Shown here piece by piece: positions 8,953-48,729 of a DNA stretch of 64,000 nucleotides. Each line of letters begins with the position of its first letter. The first letter of the stretch is position 1. The position numbers and the translations under genes were made by a program. The DNA is taken from contig NC_068998.1 of the NCBI RefSeq assembly GCF_001194135.2, positions 2,050,658 to 2,114,657 of the forward strand. Reading direction: 5' to 3'. Under the pieces are notes generated by a model, which was given only the letters and a program-made list of their open reading frames with translations, was not told the origin of the DNA and did no database searches. Origin of the DNA: Octopus bimaculoides. Taxonomy: Eukaryota.

Positions 8953-8983
<31 letters not shown>

Positions 8984-9381: not shown

Positions 9382-9431
<50 letters not shown>

Positions 9432-10703: not shown

Positions 10704-10748
<45 letters not shown>

Positions 10749-11495: not shown

Positions 11496-11572
11496 GTTGC
11501 AGTATTAACAATAATGATGATGATGATGATGATGATGATTGTGGTAATGAATTTGTATATTGTATTTTTCAG

Positions 11573-11689
11573 ACATTTGACTCCTGGTAAACGATTTTTA
11601 GCTGGAGCTCTTGCTGGGATGACTGCAGTGGCCTTTACCTACCCCCTGGATATGGTCCGTGCTCGGATGGCAGTCACAGCGAGAGAAAG
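11573..11689 (+). CDS. SLC25A42: SLC25A42 coding exon 4 ([38 protein letters not shown])
   Basis: TTTTCAG acceptor, GTGAGT donor; second signature [11 protein letters not shown]. Not in the ORF track; translated by hand. Confidence 0.93.
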
Positions 11690-12009
11690 GTGAGTGCAAA
11701 CACTCTTCTATCCTCTTTCTTGTTTCAGTCATTGGACTGGCCATACTGGGGCACCACCTTAATATTTGGTGTGAATGTGTGTGTGTGTGTGTGTGTGTTT
11801 GTTTGCATGTTTATGTGATATCTCTATCTATTTCCTCTCTATCTATTTCTATCTCTCTCTCTCTCTCTGTCTATCTATCTATTTCTGTCTATCTATCTCT
11901 CTCTCTCTCTTTTTCTCTCTATCTATTTCTATCTCTATCTATCTACCTCTCTGTCTGTCCGTCTTCATGTATGTATATGTATTGAATTTTGAATCTTTCA
12001 TGACTGCAG

Positions 12010-12161
12010 GTATCACAACTTACCAGAAGTGGTTGTAAAAATTTACCGTGAAGAAGGTTTACGAACATTATATCGAGGATTTTCACCAACAATGCTGGGT
12101 AGCATACCGTATTCTGGGACTGGTTTCTTTACCTATGAGTCACTCAAGAAACTTCATGCTG
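12010..12161 (+). CDS. SLC25A42: SLC25A42 coding exon 5 ([50 protein letters not shown])
   Basis: TGCAG acceptor, GTAAGT donor, phases 2/1. Confidence 0.93.
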
Positions 12162-13279
12162 GTAAGTTCTTCAACCAACCATTTCTCTGGAGAAATGGCT
12201 TTGACAAATTCTTTGATTGCAATATTTCTGGATACAGTTGATGGATTGAAACAAGGAGTCTTGTGTTGTTTGCATGGATTGTTTTAGGGTTGGAGGTTTG
12301 TTGTTGGTGCTGGGGATGTGTTTCGGTAACAGAGGCATGACTTATTTGTGAAGCCTGTGTATTGATGGGGGTTGGGGTTGGGGTTGGGGGCATGTATCAG
12401 TGAATCTTGTATTTTTAATGTGACCCCCAATATTAATCTCATAAAATTCTCATTTTTAGTGACTGCTACCATTTCATAGTCAGTAGGGATGGTCACTGGA
12501 ATGTCTTTGATCATAGGTCTGATATATCAGGGTTGGTATAGTGTTAAATAATTCACAGTTTTGTTTCAAGGTTTGAAATTGTGACCATGTTAACAATGTC
12601 TTTGTTACAATTCCATGAAATAGTTGTGGGATCATGAGAGAAAGAAAGACAGAAAAAAAATTGTCATTTTGTATAGAGGCTGACATATTTTTTGTGGTGA
12701 GCCCTAAAATAGGTTTAATTAAAATTATACCTGTAACAAGGAGAAAAATTACTAGCCTTAAAAACTCAGGGTAAGAAATGCAAGGGAGATAATTCCATGA
12801 TCTAAATTGATTAAAAATTGGCTGCTAGCGAGGTTGTTTACTATGAATGGAGGGAGCCTGATCTTTGGTTAGTACAGATAACCTTATCAGATCTCATTAC
12901 CCAAACTAAACATACCTATATATACCAGACTTTAAAATGACTAAGAATATTGAGAAACCTATCAATTCCACCATATTTGAGAAATGTAGGATTCTAATAC
13001 AAATTCAAGTTTTAAGTGATGTTCAGTTGCTCTTTAGCTCTAGGTGTGCCTTGTTATTATTTTTTTTTTTGTGTACTTATGTAAGTATTTTTTTTCGTTT
13101 TTTTAAAGATAAGATGTGATGATTTGAAGATTTTCCTGCTATTTATAGCAAGTCAAATACACCACTTAAAAATTCGTTTGTTAACTTAGCCTCAATTGTT
13201 TCATTTAAAATGGGTTGTGAATGTCAATGTGTACACTCACACACTTTTATAACACACTTTTATAACATAAATACACAAA

Positions 13280-13315
<36 letters not shown>

Positions 13316-13538
13316 CGTGTGATACTTAGAAGTGATGTACTTTATCAGAATTTTTTGACTGGGTCCAGTAAAACAAACCACTCTGAATCTACCCTAGAGG
13401 ACTGGTGAGTTTTAATGGGTTGGGTCGTGTGTGTGCATACATGTACACACACACAAATGAAGTTTAAATTTTCTTCTTTTTATACCTGTGCCACACCTAG
13501 AATGCAATGTTGTATCTATTGTTGTTGTTTTATTGCAG

Positions 13539-13661
13539 AGTATGGGCCTGGTGTGGAACCTCAGCCAATTGAAAGATTATGTTTTGGGGCAATAGCTGGC
13601 CTCATCGCCCAGTCTGCATCGTATCCTTTAGATATAATTCGCAGGAGAATGCAAACTGCAG
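13539..13661 (+). CDS. SLC25A42: SLC25A42 coding exon 6 ([41 protein letters not shown])
   Basis: TTGCAG acceptor, GTATGC donor; third signature [18 protein letters not shown]. Confidence 0.93.
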
Positions 13662-14393
13662 GTATGCAATAGTTTCTCTTTTTGTTTATCTTATTGTTGT
13701 TCAGCTCCAAATAAGCTTTTCTTGATCAATCCTGATTGATCAAAGACCTTCAGGTAATGATCTATCTTTAATTAAAATATGATACCCCTTATATAATGTG
13801 TCTACATTACGTTGGGCGTATAGTTTGTGTTCCCTTTTAAGGTGATAGGCTATAATAACAGGGAGATTTGGCTGTTATTTTTAGCAGGTCAATCACATAG
13901 ATTGATAGTTATTCCTTTGTTGTTTTATGATCATGTGATAAATAACACAGAAGAGCAGTCAATTATTGACCCCTTCTTTCGTTGTATTTTTGCTTCCGGT
14001 CATTTCACTTTATTTTGCTTAGTATTGAGCAAGGCATTAATGTCTCAGCTTCGCATTTCCTTTTTAAAACTCAAAGGCTTCGTGCTTAGAGGGTCAGCCG
14101 TGGGGAATATCTGGTACAACCCTTGTCTCGTCCAGACTGAATTGTTCCTCGTCCACCACTACACAATCTTCCCCCTTCGTTAGTGTTCATCATTTTGTAG
14201 AAACATCAAAAGATTTGATACAAGTTAAACTATAATTATTCTATGTCTGCCAATATTTCCTGATATTAGCCATGGAGGTAAAAGTACATTACCCATCATA
14301 TGACAAGTAACACTCTAGTTTGTAATAATTCTCAGCAAAAGTAACTCTTTTCTGGAAAATGTAATTTATGCATTTTATATATTTTTGCATTAA

Positions 14394-14489
<96 letters not shown>

Positions 14490-14822
14490 TTTTTACTAAG
14501 TAGATAAAGTTATAGCATGTGATATTTGGATAAAATATCCTTTGGACAGAAAAAGTTGAAGGTTACCTGTGGTCCGATGGTGGGACATTTATCATGTTTA
14601 CAGGAGATGTAGGTTCAAGTCCCATTCACAGCTTTCGACTTTTTCTATCTTAAAGGCCTTTTTAACCTGATATTTACTTGCTATAATTTTACCTTGATCT
14701 GCTTTGAGTTCATCTGTTAAAAACAAATTATTGCACGTTCTCTTGTAGTTTCTAAATTTTTATGATGTAAGCAATATATATATATATATATATATTTTTT
14801 TTTTTTTGTTTGTTTATTGCAG

Positions 14823-15025
14823 GTGTAACTGGTCGTAGTCATGAATATACTACTATCTTAAATACTGCACGCACTGTGATAAAAGAAGAAGGCTTCCGAC
14901 GGGGGATGTTTAAGGGACTTAGTATGAACTGGATCAAAGGTCCGATTGCTGTTGGGATTAGTTTTACTACATTTGACATTTGTCAGAATTGGTTACGGAG
15001 AAAGGCAATGTTCCATGATGGATGA
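14823..15025 (+). CDS. SLC25A42: SLC25A42 last coding exon (GVTGRSHEY...[22 protein letters not shown]...HDG*)
   Basis: TTGCAG acceptor, TGA at 15023-15025; [22 protein letters not shown] is characteristic of SLC25A42. The seven exons sum to 1065 nt (354 aa + stop). Confidence 0.95.
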
Positions 15026-15342
15026 TTATTAACATTTCTAAAACTTCAAACTGCTTGACCACTAAATCGGTAGAGTCTCCGAACAGCAGATTAAATTGGG
15101 TTATTTTATTTTATTTTAATTTTAATTTTAATTTTTTTTTTTTTTGTAAATCTATTTGTATTACCTGTGAAAAACAACAACAATAACAGCAACAACATAT
15201 TCCATGTAGTCACAGTGTGAAAATATGGAATGAGATGTAACATGGAGTAATCTCAAAGAGGCTATCTCCTAATTTGGTGGTTTATGTATTTTGGATTTGG
15301 TATCCTACAAACCTACACCCTCTCTTCTCAGAACAGGTATTG

Positions 15343-15368
15343 AATAAAACAGCTATATAAACAATAAA
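15343..15368 (+). terminator. Candidate polyadenylation signals for SLC25A42
   Basis: AATAAA at 15343-15348 and 15363-15368, about 320 nt after the stop codon; usage unverified. Confidence 0.35.
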
Positions 15369-15845
15369 TGTGAGCCACCATCCCTCTTCCTCTTCCTCCT
15401 CCTCCCTTTCTTCCTCTTGATAACATTTTCAACAATTTTTAATTTATTTTGTATTTCAATTTGCTTTTAGCTTCATCACGTGACTTCTGTCATCTATTTC
15501 TCTCTAATACGGATGTATACATACATGTATGTATAAATACATCTCATGTATGTACACATACATGTATGCATGCATGTATACATACATATTTGTGTGTATT
15601 TATTGCATATTACGAAATGTATTTGTAACACACACACACACACACACAATCTGCATCCATGTATACGATTTTTTATTTTCATTTTGAAGTAGCATCAGTT
15701 ACAGAGGCATTCAAGAGCTGATGGTTTCTTACATTGTGCAGGAAAATCTCAACTCTTGCATCACTTTGTAACTTTTGCTAATTAAAAAATAAAAATAAAA
15801 AACATACTCGTGTTATGAGTTCTATTTATCCTGATTGTACAAGCC

Positions 15846-15861
15846 AGCCTGTGTGTGTGTG

Positions 15862-15917
<56 letters not shown>

Positions 15918-16120
15918 TATATATATATATAGATATATATATATATATAGATATATATATATAGATATATATATATAGATATATATATATAGATATATAT
16001 ATATAGATATATAGATATATATATATATATAGATATATATATATATATATAGATATATATATATAGATATATATATATATGTATATATATGTATATATAT
16101 ATGTGTGTGTATATATATAT
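15846..16120. repeat. (TG)n/(TA)n microsatellite with periodic ATAG interruptions
   Basis: Read directly from the sequence. Confidence 0.95.
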
Positions 16121-16406
16121 AGTGTATTTATTGCATAATACATTTTGTATGTCAGTCATGTTGTATAAGGCAAAGGAGATAATAGATGTATAACTAAATA
16201 TTGAGTGTACAAAACCTTTAGATATCCACCTGTAATTTTGTTTTACCTGACACAGGACATTACCAATCAAGCTCTACCCATGTCTAAAGTATATTGAGCC
16301 TTTTGACATTTTTGTATAGCAAATCAAGGTAATACAATACATTGTGTGTGTGTATGTACGTACGTACGTACCTACATACCTACCTACATACATACATACA
16401 TAAATA

Positions 16407-16900
16407 CATCAGGTCATTAAGAATGAAATGTCCAATTTTGAACTGAAAGTTTATTTTACTTTATCTCAATAAAAAGCAATGCAGTTAATCAAAGTATGCA
16501 CCTAAATTATCAACACAATTTTACCATTTTATCGGTAGCTTATTTATGCCAGCAGTAAAGAATTCTGGAGAGCAAGAGTTGATGAAATCGCGAAGGGCTG
16601 TTTTTGCATCGTCTTCAGATTTGAAGTTTTTTTCCTTGCAAAAGGTTGTCTAATGCCTAGAAAACGTGATAGTCAGTTGGTGCAAGGTCTGGTGAAGATG
16701 GTGGATGACAGAGTGCTTCCAAGTTCAGTTCCTCTGAATTATTGGTCTATCCATGGGTTCGCAAAAATTGATTTACAAGAGAAAACTCACAATATAATCA
16801 GACAACATGAATTACATTTCGCAAAGTGCTGTAACTCTTCAATGTCATAAAACAAAGAATTGTCAGGATAAAACATTAAAGTTAACGACTGTCAAACTTG
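16407..16900 (-). mobile_element. Mariner transposase relic (C-terminus and probable right TIR)
   Basis: Minus-strand translation HPPSSPDLAPTDYHVF*ALDNLLQGKK...FINSCSPEFFTAGINKLPIKW*NCVDNLGAYFD* matches the mariner YSPDLAPxDY region; stop at 16485-16487; TA at 16405-16406. Confidence 0.85.
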
Positions 16901-16936
16901 GTGCATAAGAAAATAGGACATTTTATTCTTAATAAC

Positions 16937-16984
<48 letters not shown>

Positions 16985-17529
16985 TGGTGTATTTATTACA
17001 CAGTTCACTCACACATGTATACACATATTTATTTTTGTGTATATTATATAATACATGATGTAAGGTAGATGTTATATATTTTCATTACATAAATGTAATG
17101 TCAGAGGTGAGTTCTTTGTGAACAGTGTTTGCAATTTGTCTTCAGTTACCGGTTGTACTGATTTCACTTCAGTTTTCTTCTTCCTTTGTGTTATTTATGC
17201 CATCAGAAAAGGCCTGAACACCACAACTCTAATCTCTTCAAGCTTAAAAGTCTTAGCAGAAGACCCATATCTACCTGGATGAAGCATTAATAACCTGTTC
17301 TTGCGCTTCCTTCCTCGGCGGCAGTCATAGCAAGATTCCTTCGGATATGGTTAGGAGTGCAAACCAGGCCTGGAATGGGATGTCATGTGTTTTATTGAGT
17401 ACGTTAATCATTTGGTTCAGTATTAAATAATTTTTCATGAATTTAAAAAACTTGTTTTTAAAATTTATTTTATTGTGTTGAGTCAAAAGTTTTGCAATAT
17501 TTTGGTAACTTATTTGCTTCATTCTTCAA

Positions 17530-17790
17530 GTTACAACAAAAGCATCCAAGCATCCAACAGTAGAGGCCGTCATGTGGTCAGTGTCTGAAGCCACTTTTGT
17601 GTCAGTTCTTTGATCCCATGCTGATACCATTTCTTATTCTTCAAGGTGAAGAACTCTTTCACTGAAACTTCTACCTAAAAGTCTTAGAAGTCCTATATCT
17701 CCGTGGATGAGGCAACAGTAACCAATTCCTTGGAGATAGTTACAGCAGGGTGCAACCGGAGGGCCTCTATTCAAAGGAATGCTTGGCTGT
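17530..17790 (-). mobile_element. Second, different mariner transposase relic
   Basis: Frameshifted minus-strand peptides NWLLLPHP and VKEFFTLKNKKWYQHGIKELTQKWLQTL resemble mariner C-termini. Confidence 0.65.
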
Positions 17791-19353
17791 TTTTGGTGTC
17801 ATTTGACAAATAAAGAAAATTAGTTACCAAAATATTGCAAAACCTTTCACTCAACTCAATATTGTTTTGTTAATGTAATTTTTGGTTTTTGGAGATATTT
17901 TTGAAATAAAAATGGTGAGCTGAGATAATTTAAAGGGGAACACGAATACAAAAGAGAAATCTTCCTTAAAGGACGAAGTGGAAAATCCATGAGAAGTAGT
18001 GGGAGAGGGGGAAGGATTGTAGGAGAGAAAGGGATGTCTGGTGAAAAGGTAGGACAAAGAATATCCAGAGAGAATATTCTGGAAAGCTAATGGTTTCCAA
18101 TAATTTTTCTCTCAGACCATCTTGGCTGGAATCAAATGCGACAGTTTTGAAAATTTAGTTGTTTGCCCATTTTTGTTGGAGCAAAAAAAGACAGGTACTC
18201 TTTTCTTTTTTTTTAATTATTATTGTTAAGTGTTTCATAATGAGGTAAGAGTGGAACCAGTTTGTCAGCCAAGCAGCCAGGGTGAATGAAACAGTCATGG
18301 CTTGTCACATACATTACAGTAACAGCCATACACAGATTTGAACCCTTGGTCAGCTGTACTAGTGTTAAATGCTTTAAAACAAGTGAGGAGCTCTTTCTTT
18401 CTCTCTCTTCACACATCATTCCTACAAGGGCTGGCAATCATGGACCTAACCTTTATGCCAATACCTGAAAATTCTTTGATTTTTCTTTGGCTAGATACAA
18501 TAATGGTTTTCCATTGCCTTCTGTTGTTTTATTTACACTTAACTCTGCTAGTCTCTTGTTCTTTTGAGCTTACCCATGAGGCATAGGGTGTGTTTAATCC
18601 TCACAGAGGGAGACAGGTTCATGTAGCAAAGGACATGTTTAACCTTCATGTAGGGAGACAGGTTCGTGTGGCATAGGGCATGTTTTACACACATGTGGGC
18701 CTGCATTAAACATCAAACATGCCGAGGGACAAGTTCTTTTCTGAATTCTGAATGCCTTAGGTACAAGACTGTCTTCTGCTATTTAACTTGTACTGGGACC
18801 CTTGAGAGCTATTACCACCCTGGGACCAGAGTAGTGTTGACTAAGGAATAACTCACTGCTTCCCAAAACTCCTGAACTCCTAAGCTGGAGCGTCATCATC
18901 AGATGCAGTTTAAAGTCTTATCCAATGTTGGACAAATGGATTAAATACTTGAATTGCTGTACCTCATCTCAATATCAACTTCAAACTGCACCAAGATCGG
19001 CTTTTATGTTCTATTTCTCTAGTTGTCAATATAAATACCTGTAATATAATGGGGTTGAGTTTAATTAAATACCATCTGTTGCTCTTTAGAAAATCTTTGC
19101 ATATGTTTCATCCAACTGGTTTCTTATCAAAGACAAACAGAACCCTGTTTAAGTTCAGGAATGGAAAGAAGGAGCTGGGGGACCCTTTTGCTGTAAGAAA
19201 CAACAAACACGTCTTTGAGATTTAAGGATTCTCCTTAAAAGACATTTAGATTTCCTTTATTATTTTCAAACATATATTATTACATTTATTGGTAAACAAA
19301 AACCACATTGAGTTAAAGGAGGTCTACAAGGAACCAATCAACGGTTCACTGTG

Positions 19354-19388
<35 letters not shown>

Positions 19389-19764
19389 TGTTTGATATTA
19401 GTGTGTATGTGTTGGTGTGTATATTTACACACAGGTATCTAATCTGCTACTTAAAGACTAAAGTCTAAGTGGGATGTTATTTTAAGGTTAAAAAGTGAGT
19501 TTAGATAAATTTAGCAAAACCCACTGAAATATATAAAAATATTATCTTTCAAAGAAGAACATGAAAAAGGTTGAGGTAATCTCTTGGTGGAGTAAGTTAT
19601 CGGTTGGGTTTCGACTGGAGAATCTAGGGGGCAGCACTTCATTGATGTCATTGAGAAATCAATGAATGTCATACAATCCCATTAGCTTACTCCACACAGT
19701 TTTCCTTTCTTATTCACTTTTAATTTTGTTGTTTGCATATTTCCAATGAAATCCATGGCCTTTG

Positions 19765-20045
19765 TTTCAATTAATTTTGAAAATAATAATGAATTTAGTA
19801 AAATAATTGTCATTTTTAACTTGGTGTTTAGAACATAACAACATGAAACTTTGATGGAAGGTTTTAATTTTAGATCACTTTAAATCTTTTGTTACCATAT
19901 TTCTAATAAAACACATGACTTTTCTTTCAATTAATTTTGAGAATAACACTGAATTTAGTAAAATAATGTATTTATTACTCTTGCATTTGGAACATAAATT
20001 AGCATGAAATTTTATTGAAAGATTTTAATTTAGATCCGTTTAAAA
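19765..20045. repeat. Two-unit tandem repeat, period 160 bp (probably internal to a DNA element)
   Basis: TTTCAATTAATTTTGA.AATAA...GAATTTAGTAAAATAAT...TTTTAATTT.AGATC occurs at 19765 and 19925. Confidence 0.8.
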
Positions 20046-21778
20046 TGGCAAGTTTGTGTCATAGAAGCTGCATCAATCTGAGATGGTATCAAAAGCATTG
20101 AAACATGTGACTGCATGTCTAATTCTTTTCATTAATACAGTAATTAGAAGCACTAAACAAAGTTCCTGGTAAACCAAATGTGTGATAGGGGTTCCATTCT
20201 TGATAACCACCATTTCACCTCACATTTTCTCATGTTTTTCTCTTAGAAATCTAAACATTTTTCTTGTCTAATAAGAATTTGTGAGTTCTACCAAAATTGT
20301 TGTCTTTGTTTTATTTCCTGATTTGAGTTATTTCACTTGAATTGCATCTTTAATTAATTAGGAAAAAGCATGAACAATACAACTTCCTGTTTTTCCTTTT
20401 TTAACACTTTATATGAAATGGTTATTTTTATTGACGGAGATGGTCGTTGAAATCGGCAGCTATGAAATAAATTCTGTATTTAAGTTCCTAATCCTACCCA
20501 AATCAGCTTTTCTGTTCGTCACTGCTGGAATGAATTAATAAACTGTGGTACCAGTAAACTGTTGAGGTTGATTTAATCATGTTCTTATTCTATTTTTATA
20601 CAGAATTGGTTTGAAAATAAGTTTCCAGTTAACTGGATCTCTAAGCAGATTCTGTCTGTACTTTGTTTCTTTTTTTTTTTTATCTTGTTTAGACTTTGAA
20701 TACACACACACACATACAGCACAATGGTGAGACATATTTTCATGGCAGATTGCAAACAACACTGTCTGCATGATGGTAGCATTTGTTTGCAATTAGATCG
20801 TGATGACAAGACAAGGAGATACAAACACATATGGCAGGCATCTTTCAGATAAGAAAGTGATTTTAAAAATTGCTTTAAGAATTTTGCAAAAAAACAAAAT
20901 TCTCTAATTTTATTCCCCCACTTCTCAATCATCAAAAATAGATTACTCTCCCCAGTTGGGGAGACTTTGTCTTGTCTTGCAAGTTATTTGGTGACCCCAC
21001 AGGTGCTGGTGCTACAGAAAATGCACCCAGTCCACTCTGTAAAGAGCCTGGCATTAGGAAGGGCATCCAGCCCTGGAAACCTGGCCAAAACAAGACAGCT
21101 GGAGCCTGGTGCAGCTCTCTGGCATGCCACCTCCTATCAAACTGTCCAACCCATACCAGCATGGAAAACTGGTGTCAAATGATGATGATGATGATGACAC
21201 TGATATCACCAAAGTAACCAGACACCACTCATCGTATGTTGTATTTATGCAGACACTTAACGCGATGGCCAAACTGGATGCTTCTTAGGTGGCACTGACA
21301 GGTGTCTGATATATGTATGTCTAACCATTCCTCCATTGTCTGGGCTTCACTGGAAACAGGTGTTATTTTGTTTTAATTACTTTCAGTCTTTGTTTTTATG
21401 TTTTTATGAAATATTTATGAGGCTTTCTTAACATCTCTTAGGTTTATTTCAATTACAGCTGGTATTTATCCTGTTGGAAAATGATTTACTGTTTCTTAAA
21501 TAATCTTTATGAGACTTGCTGGACATTTTTGTTAGGAGACATTATTCCACACACACACACACACACACACACACTAACATACAAACACACGCACTCTAAC
21601 ATACAAACATACAAAGACACACACAATCGTAATAATAATAATCATCATCAGTGGAGTTTGGGAACAGCTATCCTTTGAACTCCCACACAACATGGAGAAT
21701 GGAAAGAGGTTGAAGGAAAAATATGAAAAAGAAACTTTTGAAAAACCTCTTCTTTTTTTGCCAGAATCACAAACTCAT

Positions 21779-24176: not shown

Positions 24177-24549
24177 AAGATGTGTGTTGGAGAGATGTGT
24201 GTTCGGAATGATGGCAGCAATCCTTACTGATGCCAACAAAGAAAGGGACATGGAAATGTTATTAAGAGAGGAGAATGCATGGGGAGAATCAACTTGCCCA
24301 AGATGACCCAACAAAAAGACCAACCAATGAAGTTGACATCAATGCAATCAAAAGCAGAAAGACAAGGAGAGCAGCTGGGTTGTCAGGAATAGTTGGTGAG
24401 ATGTGCCCAGAAGTTTGCTTTCCAATGACAAGATTCTAGGTTCATATAGTTTGTAGTCTGTATCACATTTTATGCTATAGATAGATAGACAGATAGATAG
24501 ATACACATGCACTTGAAAGAGTAAACACACACATGCAAAACTCATATAT

Positions 24550-25025
24550 ACATATACATACATAGTAACACCTTCATCAGTCAGACTCTGTTGTGTTGCA
24601 TGCAATCTGTGGCATGGAGCTCCATCATGCTGAAAGATCTCACCTTCAACCAAGTCTGGTATCAAATTGTCCTTCAGCAGCTGGATGTATTTGGCACTAT
24701 TCAAGTTACCATTAATTTTAAACGATTTTCTTGAACCATCACTTTTTATGCATCCCCAAAACATCAGACTCTTACTCCCAAACTTCACTATTCTTGTCAT
24801 GTAACGTGGGTCATTTCACTTTCTAATAAGTGAGAATTTGTCAGAAGGCCTTCAGGAAAGCAAAATAACTCCTACCACAAAATATAATGATTAGGTATGG
24901 AAATGACCCCAACAGGGCCAATGTTTCATCTGTAAAAAACACAATGCAAAACGTCTACTTATAAGTTGACAATTAGTAGAAATTTACAATAGTTTAAAGT
25001 AGCCAAAGAGTTTTGCATGGTACTG
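24550..25025 (-). mobile_element. Tc1-like transposon relic (5' TIR plus DDE core)
   Basis: PRYMTRIVKFGSKSLMFWGCIKSDG...YIQLLKDNL...FQHDGAPCH is a Tc1 catalytic segment; terminal CAGTACCATGCAAAACTCTTTGG on the minus strand from 25025 with TA at 25026-25027. Confidence 0.85.
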
Positions 25026-25165: not shown

Positions 25166-26804
25166 ATTGTCTAAAATACATTTGTGGCCTTCACTAGATA
25201 CAGATTAGTTTTACAAGCAATAACATGGCATCACCAATCTCCTTTGTTCTTATCTTAGCAATCATTCTCCAGTCTGAAGGTAAGCTTTCTAAGGATTCTT
25301 CATGTCTTTAAACCCTTTAAAATACATATTTAATTATTGTTAACGTTACTGTAGTCGTTGCTGTTGTTGATGTTATCATTATTATTATTATCATTATTTT
25401 AGCATGCTGGGCAAAATGCTTAGTGGCACTTTGTCCATCTTTATGTTCTGGGTTCAAATCCCACTGAGTTCAGTTTTACCTTTCATTCTTTCAGGGTCGA
25501 TAAAATAAGTACCAGTCATATACTGGAGCTGATGTAATTGACTTACCCAGTCTCCCAAAATCGCTGGCCTTGTGCTAAAATTTGAAACCATTATTATTAT
25601 TATTATTATTAGTAGTAGTAGTAGTAGTAGTAGTAATAGTAGTAAGGCAGCGAGATGGCAAAGTCGTTAGCACAATAGATGAAATGTTTAGCTGTATTTC
25701 GTCCGTTTTTGCATTCTGAGTTCAAATTCCACTGAGGTCGACTTTGCTTTTCATCCTTTCAGGGTCGATAAAGTAAGTACCAGTTGCATACTGGGTCGAT
25801 CTAATTGACTGGCCCCTTCTCCAAAATTTTGGGCCTTGTGCCTAGAGTAGAAAGGATTATTGTTGTTGTTGTTGTGTTCCTAATCTTTGCACAAAGACCA
25901 CAATTTAGGATAGAGGGGTTAGCTACTTCGACTGGCTGTCATGACTTGACTGGTTATTTGTTTGACCACAGAAAAGATAAAAGTCAAAATTGGTCTTGGC
26001 AAGAATTGAACTCAGAACATGTAAAGATCCAGAAAAAATTCCCCACGGTACTTTTTCTGCAAAAATCATGATTCTGTCAAATTCTTACCATTATTCAGAA
26101 CATTATTGCTGCCTCAAAGACAGGTCTTTAGACTTGCTTCTACCACTTACTGGCTTCTTTTAGAAATATTTTTTGTTTTCATGACTCAATGAGAAGACAA
26201 AGGGTAGCAACCACCTATGACTCGTTTGGAGTAAAGGGGAGATCTCTGAGGTTGGTGGGAAGGGGTGGAGGGAGAAGATTATCTTCAGATTATAGACCTG
26301 ACCTGAAGACGTCACTGGGGGTAGTGTTAAAGCAGATGTTAAATTACCACCACCACCACCACCACCACTGCTACTATCACCACCTTTATCAATGATGATG
26401 ATGATGATGACAATGACATTCCATTTCATTTGTTTTTGTTGTATTTTTCAGGGGACAAAATTCCCATTCCTAAATGTAAGTATTCCATCACTTTCTAAAA
26501 GATAACCATTTCCCCGTCAACAGACCCTTCTAGAATTCCCTGCTTCTCAAAACTCACCAACACCACTCCTGGCATACCTCCACACCCTTTCCTCATTATG
26601 ACTCTTTTAATTTTCTATCTTTCACTTGTTTCAGTCATTAGACCATTAACCAGACAAAATGCATTTCCTCTGTTGAAATTCTGCTGGGGTCAATAAATTA
26701 AGTACCAGTTATACACTGGGGTCAATGTAACTGACTAGTCCCCTCCACACAAATTTCAGGCCTTGTGTCTTAAGTAGAAAAGATTATTATTATTGTTATT
26801 ATTA

Positions 26805-26859
<55 letters not shown>

Positions 26860-28372
26860 GGTAATGAGTGCAGAATTGTCAGTATGCCGGGCAAAATGCT
26901 TAACGGCATTTTCTCTCTCTCCCAATTGAAGGGTCTTGTCCAGCAAGTTGCTTGGGGACCTAACTGCAACTGGTGCCATGTAAAAAGCACCCAGTACATT
27001 CTGTAAAGTGGTTGCTATTAGGAAGGGCATCCAGCTGTAGAAACCCTGCCAGAGCAGACAATGGAGCTCAGCACCGTCCTCTGATCTTTCAATTCTAAGC
27101 AAAACTGTTCAACCCATGCCAGCATGGAAAAAGAGATGTTAAACGATGATGATGATGATGATGATGACATTCCATTTCATTTGTCTTTCTTGTATTTTTC
27201 AGCGGACAAAATTCCCATTCCTAAATGTAAGTACTCCATCACTTTCTAAAAGATAACCATTTCCCCGTCAACAGACCCTTCTAGAATTCCCTGCTTCTCA
27301 AAACTCACCAACACCACTCCTGGCATACCTCCACACCCTTTCCTCGTTATGACTCTTTTAATTTTCTATCTTTTACTTGTTTCAGTCATTAGACTGTGGC
27401 CAGGCTGGGGCAGCACCACCTGGAACTATGAATTAACCCCACTATGTACACACACACACACAATAAACTTCTTTCAGTTTCCATTTATGAAATCCATTCA
27501 GCATGGAAAAAGGGATGTTAAACGATGATGATGATGATGATGATGATGATGGTGACATTTCATTTCATTTGTCTTTTTTTGTATTTTTCAGCGGACAAAA
27601 TTCCTATGCATAAATGTAAGTACTCCTCAACAGATCCTTCTAGAATTCCTTGCTTCTCAAAACTCACCAACACCACTCCCGGCATACCTCCACACCCTTT
27701 CCTCATTATGACTCTTTTAATTTTCTATCTTTTACTTCTTTCAGTCATTAGACTGCAGCCCATGCTGGGGCAGCACCACCTGGAACTATGAATCAACCCC
27801 ACTGTACACACACACACACACACACACAATAAACTTCTTTCAGTTTCTGCCTACCAAATCCACTCACATAGCTTTGGTCAGCCTGAGGCTGTAGTAGAAA
27901 ACACTTGCTCAAGGTGCCACCCAGTGGGACTGAACCCAGAACCAAGTGGTTGGGAATCATCATCAGTGTAAAGACCACACACACACACACACACACACTT
28001 CACTAGATACAGATTAGTTTTACAAGCAAAAACATGGCATCACCAATCTCCTTTGTTCTTATTTTAGCAATCATTCTCCAGTCTGAAGGTAAGCTTTCTA
28101 AGCATTCCTCATGTCTTTAAAAGAGATGTTAAATGATGATGATGATGACAATGACATTCCATTTTATTGTATTTTTCAGGGGACAATATTCCCATTCCTA
28201 AATGTAAGTATTCCATTACTTTCTAAAGGACTACCATTTCCCCGTCAACAGATCCTTCTAGAATTCCTTGCTTCTCAAAACTCACCAACACCACTCCTGG
28301 CATACCTCCACACCCTTTCTTTGTTATGACTCTTTTAATTTTTTATCTTTTACTTGTTTCAGTCATTAGACT
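25095..28372 (+). repeat. Local tandem segmental duplication
   Basis: About 240-bp unit at about 26395-26643, 27155-27395, 27545-27755 and 28135-28372; a second unit at about 25095-25310 and 27958-28120. Confidence 0.9.
25259..28209 (+). other. Array of six candidate symmetric micro-exons (2 x 21 nt, 4 x 24 nt)
   Basis: Polypyrimidine-AG and GTAAG(T/C) flank 25259-25279, 26452-26475, 27203-27226, 27592-27615, 28068-28088 and 28180-28203. No transcript evidence. Confidence 0.45.
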
Positions 28373-29405
28373 GCAGCCCCACTATTTATTTGCTTTTTTA
28401 AGCCTGGCACCTATTCCATTAGTCCCTTTTGCCAAACTGCTAAGTTACAGGGAGGTACACACACTAACACCAGTTGCTAAATGATCTTCGGGGACAAACA
28501 CACACATAACAAACTTCTTTCAGTTTCTGTGTACGAAATCCACTCACATGGCTTTGGTCAGCTTGAGGCTATAGCAGAAAACACTTGCTGAAGGTGCCAC
28601 ACAATGGGACTGAGCCCAGAACCATGTGGTTGGGAAGCCAGCTTCTTACCACACAGCTATGCCTGATCATAATACTATTACCTTCCTGCCTGATGATGAT
28701 GATGTAATTAGCTGCAGGGGAAGATGCGTCAGTGAAAATAGAGAGAAATCAGATTCATTTCAAACTTCTTTGCAGTATGGTTGTGCTTGATGAGTACAAA
28801 GCTGATGTTAAATATCAACTTCAGGAACATTCTGGAAAATATTGATCAAACACACAAACAAGAAATGGTAATCATACAATGTTTATTCTTCTCAAATTGT
28901 TTTTACTCTTTTGTCAGTGTTACAGTTCATGTGCTTCTCATGATCTTGCAGGAGTATCAACAAAATAATGGTATAAATTCTTATCAGAATATTCCGTTTT
29001 TCCCAGGCCTATACCAACATAAAAGTGCAAGCATGTATGTGTGCCTGGGCTAAATAAAATATTCTTTCTGGTTTAATTTGAAGAATTAATTTATAGGGAA
29101 AATTTAAAAAAAAAAAAAAAAGCGTAAGAATTAACTGGTTTCAACCTGTTATTTCCTCCTGGTTGTATTTTAGTCTGAAGCTATGTGGGTGGTGGGAGAT
29201 TCTTCAACAACAGCAATGGAAAGCTTGTTTTCCAATTTGGATAATTTCTGTTAGTGACATATATCGGTCAAATAACAGGTAATAATACTGTAAATTGAAT
29301 TTTAGATCTTATGAAGTTTACAGTCAATTTAAAACAACATCAGATACCTTGATATTGTACCTTTGTGGCCTTTTTTTTTCTGATTTAGTTTTTACAGGGC
29401 TTCAC

Positions 29406-29411
29406 TTTATT
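29406..29411 (-). terminator. Candidate polyadenylation signal for DCST2
   Basis: AATAAA on the minus strand about 160 nt past the stop codon; usage unverified. Confidence 0.3.
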
Positions 29412-29573
29412 ATCCTCTAAAAGACTGTAAATCAAGCGTATATTTCCATAACTTTAAATCATTCCACTGCAAATGATATTTCATTTTTTATCATCTTGTC
29501 TAAAATTATTAAAAAAATAGGAATAAAGGTATCATTTCCAGCTTCTATGTCTAGTTTAGCTGCTATGTCCATC

Positions 29574-31850
29574 TCATCTATACCTGTAATTACATCGGGT
29601 TCTCTCTTTTAAAGGTTTGTACTCCATCCTTATCAAGTCATAAGCTTTCTGCAGAAGTGTTTGAGATTTACGTCGTTGAAGACGGTTATTCCTTGCAATG
29701 TTTTCTTGTTCCATGGCAACTTTTGCCTGTAATTTCTTCTTATTTTGGTCAGATTGGTAAAAATTTTCAGCATCACACTCACTGGAGTCTCTTTCATCAC
29801 TCACATCAGACAAGTCAGCGTAATCAATTGGTTTCATACATACCGTACAAGTATTGTGGATATCATAGTAACAATCCAGACAATACACAGCCTTACAACT
29901 TTCATTCTCACAATGTTTGAAGTTCACTCTGTCACTAATTTTACCATCTGCACTGCATCCTAAACAATATTTGATTTCAAACCCCAGTATCTCAAGTAAT
30001 CGCCTAACTGGAGGACATCTTGCCGCTAGTTTACCTTTCCAGCTGATGTTTTTTGCATCCATAGAACTTCGATAATCAAGACGCATTTTCCGCCGTAGAA
30101 ACTTTTCCAGACTTCCCCGTTGTACCAAGAGATTAGAATAGAGCCATACTGCTCTTTCTTTGGCACGAACTGGATAAAATTCATCACAGACAATATGGCG
30201 TAGTCGTCGCCCGTAGCCTTCAAAAACGACTGATATTAGGCACAAGCCCATAATCATGCCGATGGTTTTGTATACTTCGTAATTGGGTTCAGTTGGATTA
30301 GGGAGACAAAGAGTAAGGTTTTTCACATCGTTGGTTGCCAAGGGACCAAAAATGGATATCAGAGATTTATACATGTCTGCATACGGCCCATTACCACTAA
30401 CATGTACTTGGACATGTGACAGTTCTTCGACGTCAACTTTCATTGAAAAACTCTTGCGCACTAGTTCCAGGATCCAGAAAAGGCCATAATCACAAAATAA
30501 ATGAAAAAGTATGGTGGAAGAAGTAATTAAAAAGAAAACAAAGCCTTTACAGAATTTTCGTTTCTCTTGACAAGTTAGCCTTAACGAAGTGGAACTAATA
30601 TAGTTTTGTTTCTCAGATCTCTTTAATGGAAGTAGTGTCTCTTTCGACTGCATCCCTTTAATGTAGTCAATATCATATAAATTTTTCGAAAGGTAGATAT
30701 TATCAAATTTATCTTTACTCAGGTATTTAATTCTATAACGATAAGCTTTTACAAACACAATAATTAGCATTAAGTCTGTGACAAATTTGATGAATTCCAA
30801 TTTTGTAAAATACATGCTCAGTTTTTCTTTGACTTCACGGAGCACATCTCTTTTCACTTGACTGTAACTTTTCGTCTGTTCCATAGACACTTGGTATTCG
30901 TAATCGATTTTTATTTTAAAGTAGAACATGTCATATAAATTCTGAATTGCCTTGCTAACTGGAGCGGCAAACGTTCGAAGCACAAGCTTCTTGAGTACTT
31001 CAGTAAGAGAACATAACATTTCGCCAATTCTTGCTAAGTGACATATACTTTTAAAAAAGGTTACAATATTGCACAATTTCACAAATTCGGGTAGCACCGT
31101 CCTAACACAATTAATACGAGCCAATCTAAAAGCCCTCGTGCATTTTCTAAAGGGGTCGAGCATCCTTTCATTGCAAACATTCACTATGTTGCCAAGCCAA
31201 GAAAAGATATTATTTATTGACGCAATTAGTTCTTCGATTCCTTTCTTCATTGACAGAAATGCTTGCTGTGCCATACGACTGTAGCGATTGATTGTATTCA
31301 CAAAATCTTCAATCCCACCGATAATCCCAGATAAAGGATTTAAAGCGATGGCTATAAGTCTCTCTGTTTGATTGTAGGCAACTTCTTGACCGCAGGTCAT
31401 TGCCTCAGTCATCACGACAATGTTGTTACTAAAATTGGCCACTGGTTGATTAAGAGTGAGCATGAAAGCATACAGAATTAGAAACGATCGACCTTTGCTT
31501 GTGAAAAACCCCGGGGCAGCCAAAAGGATCGTACAGCGAACTGCCACCGAGTATGGTAAAACTAAACAAAGCACAAAACCAGCGAAAAAACAAATTATGA
31601 TCGCTGTCCATAAGGTCGTTTCAACATGATAGATTAACACCAAATAAAGAAAAAGATTAACCATAGAACCAAACAGGAACCATAACGACAACGAGCAGAA
31701 CTGTTGATAGTAGCTACCTGGTTTTAAGTCCTCTTTTTTACGGATACAACATTCTTCATGTAACTTCACAGCTCTTCTCTTTGCCTTGGCAAGACGACGT
31801 AATGATATTTTCAGCTGAATGGCTTTCAGCGTTTTTTGCACAAACATCAT
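29574..31850 (-). CDS. DCST2: DC-STAMP domain-containing protein, DCST2/SPE-42-like, single coding exon, 758 aa
   Basis: Uninterrupted ORF with several hydrophobic helices; motifs VRCTILL..P.FF..KGR, CGQEVAYNQT, WL..I..VCN, DNIYL, DYGLFWILELVR, RLRHIVC..FYP.R.KER...LY; C-terminal YCLGC...C....C...YC..C......C.VC RING-like finger followed by D.ERDSSE. The DCST2 rather than DCST1 call rests on recalled motifs. Confidence 0.88.
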   Translation of the reverse strand: MMFVQKTLKAIQLKISLRRLAKAKRRAVKLHEECCIRKKEDLKPGSYYQQFCSLSLWFLFGSMVNLFLYLVLIYHVETTLWTAIIICFFAGFVLCLVLPYSVAVRCTILLAAPGFFTSKGRSFLILYAFMLTLNQPVANFSNNIVVMTEAMTCGQEVAYNQTERLIAIALNPLSGIIGGIEDFVNTINRYSRMAQQAFLSMKKGIEELIASINNIFSWLGNIVNVCNERMLDPFRKCTRAFRLARINCVRTVLPEFVKLCNIVTFFKSICHLARIGEMLCSLTEVLKKLVLRTFAAPVSKAIQNLYDMFYFKIKIDYEYQVSMEQTKSYSQVKRDVLREVKEKLSMYFTKLEFIKFVTDLMLIIVFVKAYRYRIKYLSKDKFDNIYLSKNLYDIDYIKGMQSKETLLPLKRSEKQNYISSTSLRLTCQEKRKFCKGFVFFLITSSTILFHLFCDYGLFWILELVRKSFSMKVDVEELSHVQVHVSGNGPYADMYKSLISIFGPLATNDVKNLTLCLPNPTEPNYEVYKTIGMIMGLCLISVVFEGYGRRLRHIVCDEFYPVRAKERAVWLYSNLLVQRGSLEKFLRRKMRLDYRSSMDAKNISWKGKLAARCPPVRRLLEILGFEIKYCLGCSADGKISDRVNFKHCENESCKAVYCLDCYYDIHNTCTVCMKPIDYADLSDVSDERDSSECDAENFYQSDQNKKKLQAKVAMEQENIARNNRLQRRKSQTLLQKAYDLIRMEYKPLKERTRCNYRYR

Positions 31851-32336
31851 ATTCCAAGAATAATCAGATATCAGTTTTAATCAACAGTAACTTGTAGATC
31901 ATTACACACAGCCTGGAGCCCTCCATGGAAAATAAGGATCAAAGGAACATGGATGTTATTCAATGAATTTGAGAAGCTTTTTGAAATGGGAATTGCATTG
32001 CCATTCTTTCTTTTATTTTTACCTGTTTAATGGCAAATTCACGGCAAGAACTGAAACATTTTTTAACGTTGTTCTTCTTACGATTATCTGTGTTGGTTTG
32101 CTTCTTGTTAATCCCAATATTTCGACACTGCTTCTGTTGGTTTTGTATTCCTGTTAAGTTTTCTTGCAAGCAAGGTTTTGAAAGGAATCGAAACAACGGA
32201 ATAGTTCTACAATTTGTACAGACACGTATGGCTAAATAATTAATAACCTATAAAACAATGGATTGAATAAGACAAATCGAACTATTGAGGCAAATTATTG
32301 ATTTCAGGCAACGCTTGAACGAAGAACAAATCTTAA

Positions 32337-32368
32337 CGGAAGTTACGTGACATGACGTCAAAGATGGC
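32337..32368. promoter_or_regulatory. Promoter motif cluster upstream of DCST2 (ETS CGGAAGT, CRE TGACGTCA, YY1-like AAGATGGC)
   Basis: CGGAAGT 32337-32343, TGACGTCA 32353-32360 and AAGATGGC 32361-32368 in a CpG-retaining patch about 500 bp upstream of the ATG. Confidence 0.55.
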
Positions 32369-32729
32369 TTCTGGCCACCAACGACATTTCTTTCATTTTC
32401 TCTTCTTTAAGAACAAAACAGAAATTAAAATCTCACGTACTCGTTTCACATTTTATATCATGGATTCATTTAAGAATTAATTTAACATGTTTATTTTCCA
32501 TTAATAGTACAGGTTATTGATTATGTGCTGTTAAACGCAATGGAACCATGATCCAGAAATGGGAGACTGATGCCTTTCAGATGAAGTCAAGCTTTTTATT
32601 TTACAATTTGTCTTAAAAATTGTTATACGTATGACTGGATTACAACATCAGTATTTTCTTTACTGAAAATAGAGAAGAAAAATGTGTGGAAATCGTCATC
32701 AACTCAATTTAATAATTAGAATTAGAATT

Positions 32730-32937
32730 AGCTGGCAGAATCGTTAGCACGCCGGGCGAAATGTATTTCGTCTGCCGTTACGTTCTGAGTTCAAATTCCG
32801 CCGAGGTCGACTTTGCCTTTCATCCTTTCGGGGTCGATTAAATAAGTACCATTTACGCACTGGGGTCGATGTAATCTACTTAATCTCTTTGTCTGTCCCC
32901 TCTATGTTTAGCCCCCTGTGGGCAATAAAGAAATAAA
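32730..32937 (+). mobile_element. SINE family B, CpG-intact copy
   Basis: tRNA-like head (AGCTGGCAGAATCG...GAGTTCAAATTCC), core GCCTTTCATCCTTTCGGGGTCGAT, A-rich tail; possible TSD ATAATTAGA at 32712-32720 and 32942-32950. Many decayed copies elsewhere (25.4-25.9, 36.1-36.3, 37.0-37.3, 61.5-61.8 kb). Confidence 0.85.
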
Positions 32938-34020
32938 TATTATAATTAGACTCTATAACAAAAGCATGATCGCCCGATCATGTAATCAGTATGCGTGCGC
33001 GAAACGACCGAAAGTTGTGGCGTACTAGTATCGAAAGATCGCCTTATATTTAATTAGCAACACCTGATTTTTAAAATTAGTTTTATGTCATAATAATTAT
33101 AAAAAAATTATTTTAGACAAACCAAGGCAATCATTAGCTGTAACCCCAATGTATCCCCTTGTTGTTGTAGTGGTAACGACTTGACACTTGTAGACGATGT
33201 TTCTAGTGAGGTAGATTCTGTTTAAAGGGCAGTTGGGTGTTTTGCTACAGTTATATGTTTTGATCATAGGAATCCTCCATTATTAGAGTTGGATTTGTCA
33301 GTGCTCCAGCATGGTCGCAGTCAAATGACTGAAACAAATGAAAGGATACTATTTTCTTCACTCCTACTCCCCTCCACTCACTACTCCCCCTACTTCCACT
33401 CCACTACTATCAGCCCCCCCCCTCCCCCCTGTTCTGTCTCTGGCTGACATTGAAACTTTTGAATTTCTCTTCTTGCAGCAATCCAACCTAAACTCAAATG
33501 TCCGAAAAACAAACCCAAAGTCAAGTACTGTCTGATGAACCCATGTACCATAGGACCACACAGTTTTTGCCCATTATATCCCGTTGCTACTTGTTAGTAA
33601 GTATAAACAACCAGCTTCATATTCTCTTTAATGAGTTGTTCCTTATTCACCCNNNNNNNNNNNNNNNNNNNNNNNNNNNNNNNNNNNNNNNNNNNNNNNN
33701 NNNNNNNNNNNNNNNNNNNNNNNNNNNNNNNNNNNNNNNNNNNNNNNNNNNNNNNNNNNNNNNNNNNNNNNNNNNNNNNNNNNNNNNNNNNNNNNNNNNN
33801 NNNNNNNNNNNNNNNNNNNNNNNNNNNNNNNNNNNNNNNNNNNNNNNNNNNNNNNNNNNNNNNNNNNNNNNNNNNNNNNNNNNNNNNNNNNNNNNNNNNN
33901 NNNNNNNNNNNNNNNNNNNNNNNNNNNNNNNNNNNNNNNNNNNNNNNNNNNNNNNNNNNNNNNNNNNNNNNNNNNNNNNNNNNNNNNNNNNNNNNNNNNN
34001 NNNNNNNNNNNNNNNNNNNN

Positions 34021-34052
<32 letters not shown>

Positions 34053-34066
34053 TACATACATATATA

Positions 34067-34104
<38 letters not shown>

Positions 34105-34676
34105 TATATGTAAGTGTGTGCATACATGCATTCCTTTATTGCAGTTCCTATTTATGTGGCGGCTGTTACTCAAAATGGTTCAACAGCAGAGGAAAAGAGG
34201 TGTTTTGCTCTCGGAGATAAAAAAGAAACCCAAGGAAATTCCTGAAAGCCAAAGAATTATGTCAGATTGGTACGAATGATATTTCTATGATTCATTTGAT
34301 ATCAAATATATACAGCTGTCTTAATAAATACACTGTTGCTATCTTGCAATCTAGTTGTTTTATCGTAATAATTTTTAATTCTTTTCACATGTAAGAAATT
34401 GCCCATGCTGGTGCTACATAGAAGGTACCTAGTACACCCTTTAATGTGAGTGGCATTAGGGAAGGCCTCCAGCCGTAGAAACTATGCCAAAACAGACAAC
34501 TGGAGCCTGGTGCAGCTCTCCAGCTTGTCCGGTCCTGTCAGACTGTCCAAGACTGGAAATGAGTAACACCATTTGTATGATGGTGATGCTTGTTTATGCC
34601 ATATGATGTCAGGACAAGGGCACACACACGCATACATATGAGAAGTATAGAGAAAATAACAAAGTACTGGGACCTA

Positions 34677-48719: not shown

Positions 48720-48729
48720 NNNNNNNNNN

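Follow-up and report, generated by a model that had tools for sequence, protein, structure and literature searches.

Does a cephalopod genome contain a gene assembled from an array of tiny symmetric exons, and if so, where does it begin and end, in which frame is it read and what does it encode? The question is raised by a stretch of 64,000 nucleotides (nt) from Octopus bimaculoides (RefSeq assembly GCF_001194135.2, contig NC_068998.1, positions 2,050,658 to 2,114,657 of the forward strand), hereafter called the window, to which coordinates refer unless another locus is named. An earlier note, made from the letters of the window alone, had described six segments of 21 or 24 nt as a tandem array of micro-exons from an unannotated gene resembling the micro-exon genes (MEGs) of schistosomes. 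Our analysis indicates, with a probability of roughly 0.88, that there is one real gene on the plus strand, with a coding sequence from 25225 to 34220, the exons listed in Table 1, phase 1 as its frame and a product in three parts. The first part would be a signal peptide from a first coding exon, which is present as the tandem copies A1 and A2. The second would be a linker of 8-residue modules of the form (S/G/W)-D-K-I-P-I-P-K, each contributed by one 24-nt phase-1 micro-exon, and the third a C-terminal domain with eight cysteines from two ordinary exons, located beyond a DC-STAMP gene that is nested in antisense orientation.

Gene model and correspondence with RefSeq proteins

All six segments were recovered with their starts at 25259, 26452, 27203, 27592, 28068 and 28180 and with lengths of 21, 24, 24, 24, 21 and 24 nt, as had been described. 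Each is preceded by a pyrimidine tract and an AG and followed by a donor, GTAAGT after the 24-mers and GTAAGC after the 21-mers. The joined segments reproduced both peptide strings given previously (QSFSSLK-GTKFPFLN... in phase 0, IILQSE-GDKIPIPK... in phase 1); these two phases are free of stops, and phase 2 contains stops. Self-BLAST resolved two types of locally duplicated units: two A units (25189-25312 and 27998-28121, with 96.8% identity over 124 nt) and four B units of about 250 bp each. The pattern TGTATTTTTCAG, any 24 nt and GTAAGTA occurs four times in the window, as compared to 0.00 expected from shuffled sequences. In the unit alignment the flanks carry indels and the exons have none, which agrees with the constant exon length noted before, and the number of sites at which the 24-mers differ rises from the four reported to a maximum of five (B3 versus B4).

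The gene turned out to be annotated, as LOC128249893 in O. bimaculoides and LOC118766410 in O. sinensis, both under the name 'uncharacterized protein'. As proposed, a protein-coding gene does contain the four 24-nt segments as symmetric micro-exons, and RefSeq proteins in the two species use these junctions. A search of 5.8 billion proteins with the spliced O. bimaculoides peptide yielded nothing at E <= 10, and searches with its counterparts from O. sinensis and O. vulgaris, translated in either open phase, led to XP_036365701.1 (LOC118766410, O. sinensis). This protein of 170 amino acids consists of MASPISFLLILAIILQSE, eleven 8-residue units (including ADKTPIHK, SDKTPIHK, SDQTPIHK, SDEETIHI, SDEIPIHI, SGKTPIHK and WDEVPIPK) and SIKHKFKCPKDKPKVKYCLMNPCTVGQSSFCSLYPTATCYPYLCGGCYSKWFNSRKREVFCSRR, and it contains the exons S1-S5 that were read independently from O. 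sinensis DNA. Because of its sequence, phase 1 can be taken as the true frame, a choice between phases 0 and 1 that had been left undecided, and the A exon as the start; 17 of the 18 residues encoded by A1 match its N-terminus. Its C-terminus was located in the window with tblastn at 33479-33596 (E = 1.7e-19) and 34145-34220 (E = 8e-14). Both ends of the gene, for which no convincing exon had been seen, were thereby found, with A1 at 25225-25279 as the first coding exon.

An exhaustive HMMER search recovered the O. bimaculoides protein, XP_052830423.1 (LOC128249893, 'isoform X1'), which is the exact translation of 27124-27226, 27592-27615, 28180-28203, 33479-33596 and 34145-34220. It splices B3 straight to B4, which gives K-W-D, and leaves out both A1 and A2. 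Its start is an ATG at 27124 in a stretch of short interspersed nuclear element (SINE) and (GAT)n sequence of the intron 5' of B2; this start is probably mis-annotated, and the model lacks the signal-peptide exon and B1. The seven-exon model A1-B1-B2-B3-B4-exon 6-exon 7 has 345 nt, closes in frame and encodes 114 amino acids, MASPISFVLILAIILQSE-GDKIPIPK-SDKIPIPK-SDKIPMHK-WDNIPIPK-SIQPKLKC...CSRR, which is the best-supported full product in the window. Homology to O. sinensis makes it a better model than isoform X1, and the same homology suggests that A1 or A2 serves as start exon and that B1, absent from isoform X1, is included in the product. A start at A2 instead of A1 would give a product of 90 amino acids. 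Judged by its sequence features, the product would probably be secreted. A second gene model, of 93 amino acids at 26392-28329, fits only the combination of 26392-26475, B2, B3 and 28180-28329 in phase 0, as far as its length alone can tell.

Table 1. Exons of the gene and predicted splice junctions in the window (a slash marks the junction; residues in parentheses are split between exons).
Feature	Position	Strand	Description
First coding exon, copy A1	25225..25279	+	ATG, 18 codons plus 1 nt, MASPISFVLILAIILQSE/G; donor GTAAGC
Micro-exon B1	26452..26475	+	24 nt, phase 1/1, (G)DKIPIPK; same unit type as the exons of XP_036365701.1
Micro-exon B2	27203..27226	+	24 nt, phase 1/1, (S)DKIPIPK; donor junction used by XP_052830423.1
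Micro-exon B3	27592..27615	+	24 nt, phase 1/1, (S)DKIPMHK; both junctions used by XP_052830423.1
First coding exon, copy A2	28034..28088	+	ATG, predicted signal peptide identical to A1; donor GTAAGC
Micro-exon B4	28180..28203	+	24 nt, phase 1/1, (W or G)DNIPIPK; both junctions used by XP_052830423.1
Exon 6	33479..33596	+	118 nt, SIQPKLKCPKNKPKVKYCLMNPCTIGPHSFCPLYPVATC(Y); acceptor ttcttgcag, donor GTAAGT; first part of the 8-Cys domain
Exon 7, last coding exon	34145..34220	+	76 nt including the TAA stop, (Y)SYLCGGCYSKWFNSRGKEVFCSRR and stop; acceptor ttattgcag
Predicted junction A to B1			CAGTCTGAAG/GGGACAAAATTCC
Predicted junction A2 to B4			CAGTCTGAAG/GGGACAATATTCC
Predicted junction B1 to B2			CATTCCTAAAT/CGGACAAAATTCCC
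Predicted junction B2 to B3			CATTCCTAAAT/CGGACAAAATTCCT
Predicted junction B3 to B4			ATGCATAAAT/GGGACAATATT
Predicted junction B4 to exon 6			CATTCCTAAAT/CAATCCAACCTAAAC
Junction B3 to 21-mer, if the 21-mer were a cassette exon			ATGCATAAAT/CAATCATTCTCC (shorter form GCATAAAT/CAATCATTCTCC)

Variation of the micro-exons among copies and species

An exact sequence match places the window on chromosome CM046618.1 of assembly GCA_001194135.2. We compared the array to the syntenic loci of O. sinensis (L002 and L006) and O. vulgaris (L003), which were found via the orthologues of the DC-STAMP gene and which carry A and B units at the matching position and on the matching strand. The comparison of copy number between species that had been suggested gave 4 B and 2 A units in O. 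bimaculoides and 16 B and 9 A units in O. sinensis. The splice dinucleotides, whose loss at the orthologous loci had been named beforehand as counting against the exons, are intact around all B exons. In total, 25 of 25 B units (4 from O. bimaculoides, 16 from O. sinensis and 5 from O. vulgaris) consist of TGTATTTTTCAG, exactly 24 nt and GTAAGTA, and none of the 25 exons has an indel or a phase-1 stop. The O. bimaculoides and O. sinensis sets fit this splice pattern with zero mismatches, zero being expected by chance. When 14 B units drawn from all three species were aligned, neither the acceptor block TTGTATTTTTCAG nor the donor GTAAGTA showed any change, and the flanks contained several indels.

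The O. sinensis gene spans 41.8 kb, again with the DC-STAMP gene nested in antisense orientation. In its RefSeq model the first A copy is followed by 11 of the 16 B exons; every internal A copy is skipped, and five B exons are omitted despite perfect splice sites. As in O. sinensis, both C-terminal exons of O. vulgaris are intact, keep their splice sites and encode all eight cysteines; the whole O. vulgaris gene lies at about 2628-21447 (minus strand) of locus L003, yet it was not called there in the collection searched. Since each micro-exon has 24 nt and is in phase 1/1, the frame survives the duplication, loss or skipping of any number of them. The array grows and shrinks as A and B units, located among SINE-like repeats and microsatellites, are duplicated in tandem at the locus, with splice signals held constant while exon content changes. 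Array and start exon have duplicated together, and their numbers differ four-fold between congeners.

The exons vary more than the introns that surround them. Pairwise diversity among the 14 B units was 0.219 for the exon as compared to 0.058 and 0.084 for the introns upstream and downstream of it, an approximately three-fold excess. No other 24-column window of the alignment is as variable as the exon, with 14 of its 24 columns variable as compared to 37 of 148 in the flanks (Fisher p = 0.0016, Mann-Whitney p = 3e-4, both only indicative since the copies are related), and the exons diverged more than the flanks in 86 of 91 pairs. Among pairs from different species, those with the most similar flanks differ at 5.7-8.3% of the flanking positions and at 12.5-37.5% of the exon positions, and nearby non-coding DNA gives a between-species baseline of about 6%. 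The proportions of nonsynonymous (pN) and synonymous (pS) differences in the micro-exons both greatly exceed the value for the introns. The hypervariability of the micro-exons, as compared to their introns, is a robust observation. Between O. bimaculoides and O. sinensis, the signal exon differs at 2 of 54 nt, with a ratio of nonsynonymous to synonymous divergence (omega) of 0.32, and the C-terminal exons differ at 21 of 195 nt (10.8%; dN 0.109, dS 0.158, omega 0.69), with all eight cysteines kept.

The hypervariability may be caused by diversifying selection that resists the homogenisation of old paralogous exons while their flanks are exchanged. Relaxed constraint on the exons combined with slightly constrained introns is also possible, as is a mixture of this with diversifying selection. 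Classical positive selection is not claimed, because pN in the micro-exons is not above pS and omega of the C-terminal exons is 0.69.

Several observations weigh against the model of one gene with the three-part product. Isoform X1 begins at an intronic ATG, without the signal peptide and B1, and the use of A1 and B1 rests on homology to O. sinensis. Both RefSeq models are computational, and the gene is known here from DNA and models, not from transcript reads; a signal peptide followed by the modules was found in none of the transcript-derived open reading frames among the 5.8 billion proteins, where the O. sinensis RefSeq model was the sole match. In phase 1 the micro-exons have a pN of 0.22, which is not above their pS of 0.31, so that adaptation is only a possible cause of their hypervariability. 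Finally, the C-terminal domain has no family in Pfam, no sequence relative in the PDB and no match to a PDB fold.

The strongest alternative accepts the gene and denies the array a role: the micro-exon region could be a fast-drifting, constitutively spliced spacer or pro-region, with a neutral stutter in copy number by unequal crossing-over between flanking repeats, dead internal A copies and no functional repertoire of isoforms. We regard this as a serious contender, although short of even odds. It would account for a pN that is about equal to or below pS, and an omega of 0.69 in the C-terminal exons is consistent with weak constraint. Recent duplication has left many of the O. sinensis units identical, the RefSeq models skip the internal A copies, one such copy in O. 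vulgaris is frameshifted and has lost its GT donor, and a relative exists in which the linker has a mere 13 residues. Pure neutrality does not, however, predict an exon divergence of 12-38% next to about 6% in the adjoining introns and nearby non-coding DNA. Also counting against this alternative, none of the 25 copies has an exon indel or phase-1 stop, and the O. sinensis model omits 5 of 16 exons whose splice sites are perfect.

Exon skipping and alternative A starts might generate linkers that differ in length and sequence before one and the same 8-Cys domain, a possibility to which we give somewhat less than an even chance. Two observations relate to isoforms, the use of 11 of 16 micro-exons by the O. 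sinensis model and the label 'isoform X1' of the O. bimaculoides protein. The first bases of the B exons also differ with their position. B exons located right after an A copy in O. bimaculoides (B1 and B4) start with GG, as does the last B exon in all three species (L006 33272, L003 13266), and a GG start yields Gly after an A exon and Trp after a B exon. The remaining B exons start with CG or CA, which yields Ser after a B exon; the one exception, at L006 12360, starts with TG (Leu) and is skipped by the RefSeq model. These first bases may reflect the splice partners that are actually used.

The duplicated first exon and the surroundings of the array

The two 21-nt segments (25259-25279 and 28068-28088), which had been counted among the micro-exons, are the last 21 nt of the tandem first-exon copies A1 and A2. 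An in-frame ATG that had been missed lies 34 nt 5' of each 21-mer (25225, 28034), with an in-frame TAG 27 nt further 5'. Both ATGs have A at -3 and G at +4, and their frame is phase 1 of the earlier note. The encoded peptide, MASPISFVLILAIILQSE, resembles a signal peptide in its sequence features, with an 11-residue hydrophobic core (mean Kyte-Doolittle hydropathy up to 3.4) that is followed by small polar residues. The apparent acceptor AG of the 21-mers falls within signal-peptide codons (...L-I-L-A...), and the pyrimidine tract consists of the F-V/L-L-I-L codons. Since the upstream ATGs are in frame and the acceptor-like signal is made of leader codons, we take the 21-mers to be the 3' ends of first-exon copies.

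Among eight A copies from the three species, the exon is near-invariant from about -35 through the donor; the differences comprise synonymous changes and one V/L change that is fixed between species and uniform within each. An A unit and a B unit separated by a short intron, of about 91 nt in O. bimaculoides, form a pair that is conserved in O. sinensis and O. vulgaris. A2 could be either an alternative first exon, which would yield the 90-residue product via B4, or a silent duplicate. The internal A copy of O. vulgaris mentioned above (L003, ATG near 18917) has a 1-nt deletion and a donor changed from GT to AT, and is decaying.

That the 21-mers are instead true internal cassette micro-exons, which use the TAG acceptor in the A unit and add SIILQSE in frame, appears quite improbable to us. 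An acceptor-like cttatcttag and a GTAAGC donor are present, 21 nt preserve phase 1, inclusion would give an open product of 121 amino acids, and the 21-mer is conserved in all A copies. This conservation is, however, fully accounted for by membership in the signal-peptide exon; SIILQSE is not internal in either RefSeq protein, where B is joined directly to B (K-W-D), and a hydrophobic signal-peptide fragment would be odd within a linker rich in K, P and D. We therefore retain A1 and A2 as copies of the first coding exon.

It is hardly credible that there are no exons here and that a locally duplicated repeat with chance splice-like signals misled the gene predictors: the units do lie amid SINE-like repeats and microsatellites, the copies, as duplicates, are not independent, and transcripts were not seen directly, but an ATG with a hydrophobic leader, 4 to 16 exact 24-nt exons and a conserved 8-Cys domain share one open frame in three species, the splice blocks are invariant around 24 variable nt, the C-terminal domain has hundreds of homologues, and the units occur nowhere else in the window.

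The A and B units lie among dispersed SINE-like repeats and microsatellites. The idea that the units themselves are dispersed repeats was rejected, as self-BLAST and fuzzy searches placed them only at 25.2-28.4 kb. Scans of 24.5-34.5 kb against Rfam and for tRNA genes gave no match. A reverse-transcriptase-like insertion of a long interspersed nuclear element (LINE) is found between a B unit and the next A unit in the other two species. It is long in O. vulgaris (L003, about 14800-17100, minus strand) and truncated in O. sinensis (L002, about 15090-15900, minus strand), where it adjoins the region upstream of the ATG of that A copy; it is absent from the O. bimaculoides array. Elsewhere in the window, an open reading frame remnant at 24348-24800 (minus strand) resembles a Tc1/mariner-type transposase (...FQHDGAPCH...), with no Pfam match at E < 0.01, and another at 49259-50311 (minus strand) resembles the C-terminal part of a LINE reverse transcriptase.

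The DC-STAMP/DCST2-like gene (29574-31850, minus strand) has a single exon, encodes 758 amino acids (Pfam DC_STAMP, E = 7e-52) and lies in antisense orientation within the 5.3-kb intron between B4 and exon 6. Its nesting is repeated in O. sinensis, and order and orientation are the same in O. vulgaris. The only long open reading frame between B4 and this gene, at 28776-29052 (plus strand), was considered as a last exon, having a ctttgcag acceptor, 92 codons in phase 1 and a TAA that overlaps AATAAA. It was ruled out by an 8-nt indel between O. bimaculoides and the two other species, and by a fourth octopod (Logan contig L004) that lacks the AG and has a 1-nt indel; it is probably due to chance, or is the 3' untranslated region of DC-STAMP read on the opposite strand. 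The micro-exon array itself is free of assembly gaps. A gap at 33653-34020 falls inside the intron between exons 6 and 7, whose true length is thus not given by the assembly, and other runs of N are located at 2376-2385, 42742-43037, 46062-46201, 47133-47257, 48720-48729, 49320-49916, 50335-50344 and 55361-55850.

The cysteine-rich domain and comparison with known systems

A HMMER search of 1.84 billion representative proteins identified many that match residues ~106-170 of the O. sinensis protein, often as 2 to 12 tandem stretches, with phmmer whole-protein E-values for the domain family from 5e-39 to 1e-6. The credible matches are to the 8-Cys domain, and those to the repeat region look compositional. 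The module has about 50 residues and eight cysteines, with the consensus CPxGxPxVxC-xxxPC-xxAxC-xAxPxAxC-xxNYC-GGC-xAxFYxxxGxxVxC. The octopus domain has the same cysteine spacing (C-x9-10-C-x4-C-x4-7-C-x7-C-x4-C-x2-C-x12-15-C) and the C-G-G-C core, and an alignment of 34 sequences, headed by the O. bimaculoides domain, shows no change in any of the eight cysteine columns. Family members include P0012-P0015, P0037, P0045, P0067 and P0142. In relatives, the module alternates with Kunitz domains (P0012), precedes a WAP-like segment (P0155) or is combined with HYR (P0018). These neighbours hint that the domain may act in protease inhibition or extracellular binding, and we infer that it is the functional part of the protein.

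The module looks like an uncurated domain family. Pfam searches with the protein, its C-terminus and ten relatives left it uncovered and identified only Kunitz and HYR in adjoining parts of the relatives; for the whole octopus protein, Pfam gave one chance-level match to a yeast repeat at the cut-off and two below theirs, none of them credible. A model of the domain predicted by AlphaFold2 (AF2) from the 34-sequence alignment has a mean confidence (pLDDT) of 83.5, and a Foldseek search of the PDB with this model gave no match with E < 3 or a TM-score > 0.35. A suspected likeness to the snail carboxypeptidase inhibitor NvCI (PDB 4a94, chain C) was not borne out: a profile search gave E = 6, single-sequence searches gave nothing, and 4a94 was not among the 50 Foldseek matches listed. 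The closest single-domain relative (P0067/P0160, from Logan contigs of about 1.1 kb) combines a signal peptide and the domain via a linker of 13 residues and lacks repeat modules, which suggests that the micro-exon array is an expansion of the linker in the octopus lineage.

Compared to the proteins with tandem 'CPxGxPxVxC...NYCGGC' modules, the octopus domain aligns with all eight cysteines. Most of those proteins have 2 to 12 copies, often together with Kunitz, WAP-like or HYR domains, whereas in the octopus protein a single copy, in which the C3-C4 loop is longer, follows the micro-exon linker. Conotoxin-type precursors combine a conserved signal, a variable intervening region and a disulphide-rich C-terminal domain in which a fixed cysteine framework contrasts with fast-evolving residues between the cysteines. 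The octopus protein has the same order of signal, variable and cysteine-rich parts. Conotoxin-type pro-regions are, however, not known to be derived from tandem micro-exons, and the octopus protein has no evident dibasic processing site and no known expression in venom or glands.

MEGs have a coding sequence made mostly of very small symmetric exons, a signal peptide, pools of splice variants and a mature region that changes more rapidly than the signal peptide, and they "appear to be restricted to platyhelminths" (PMC4350168, which in its passages on MEGs cites DeMarco et al. 2010 for the description). The earlier comparison with these genes is apt for the architecture, namely a signal-peptide-like start, tandem variable micro-exons and a change in copy number, and makes the octopus gene an analogue but not a member. 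Shared with MEGs are an N-terminal exon for a predicted signal peptide, tandemly duplicated tiny symmetric exons whose number can vary free of frameshift, transposable elements or repeats around the units, and a small, predicted-secreted protein. The mature region also evolves faster than the signal peptide, as seen from the omega values of the signal and C-terminal exons (0.32 and 0.69) and from the high divergence of the micro-exons. In contrast, there is no sequence similarity, the phylum is another (a cephalopod), and Pfam and HMMER searches found no homology to the described MEG protein families. The micro-exons account for 96 of 345 nt (28%) of the coding sequence in O. bimaculoides and 264 of 513 nt (51%) in O. 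sinensis; they exceed half only marginally and in the latter species only, as compared to most of the coding sequence in MEGs. They also belong to a single 24-nt family, whereas MEG exon sizes are heterogeneous, the protein ends in a conventional 8-Cys domain, and the first exon is itself duplicated inside the array. Finally, MEGs produce pools of splice variants, whereas splicing variants of the octopus gene, itself known here from DNA and models, are hypothetical.

The closest analogue is Schistosoma VAL-6, in which a block of tiny symmetric exons is joined to ordinary exons for a globular domain (PMC4350168). It differs in having an SCP/VAL domain and not one of the 8-Cys NYCGGC type, in belonging to an unrelated lineage and in that the VAL-6 group is described as intracellular. 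The octopus layout is thus apparently convergent with schistosome MEGs, not homologous to them. Among the papers searched, none linked micro-exons with octopus or contained the LOC or protein identifiers of the gene. Annotations as an uncharacterized protein exist in two species, and what is apparently new is a tandem-micro-exon layout outside the flatworms.

A broader idea is that octopus has independently evolved a MEG-like generator of diversity, in which nested first exons (all of them provided with an ATG, a signal peptide and a conserved region upstream) and skippable, hypervariable 24-nt exons would yield combinatorial or graded sets of secreted proteins that share an 8-Cys effector, with rapid remodelling of the array and possibly diversifying pressure from pathogens, prey or mates. 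We put this forward tentatively and consider it rather unlikely in its full form. In schistosomes, genes with many tiny symmetric exons in a row are a textbook peculiarity, and their presumed role is to vary the proteins secreted where parasite and host meet. If the layout arose independently in a cephalopod, it would be a convergent solution and not a flatworm oddity, and the octopus gene would offer a tractable case from free-living animals, with chromosome-scale genomes for at least three species, in which to study the recognition of micro-exons by the spliceosome and the expansion of exon arrays.

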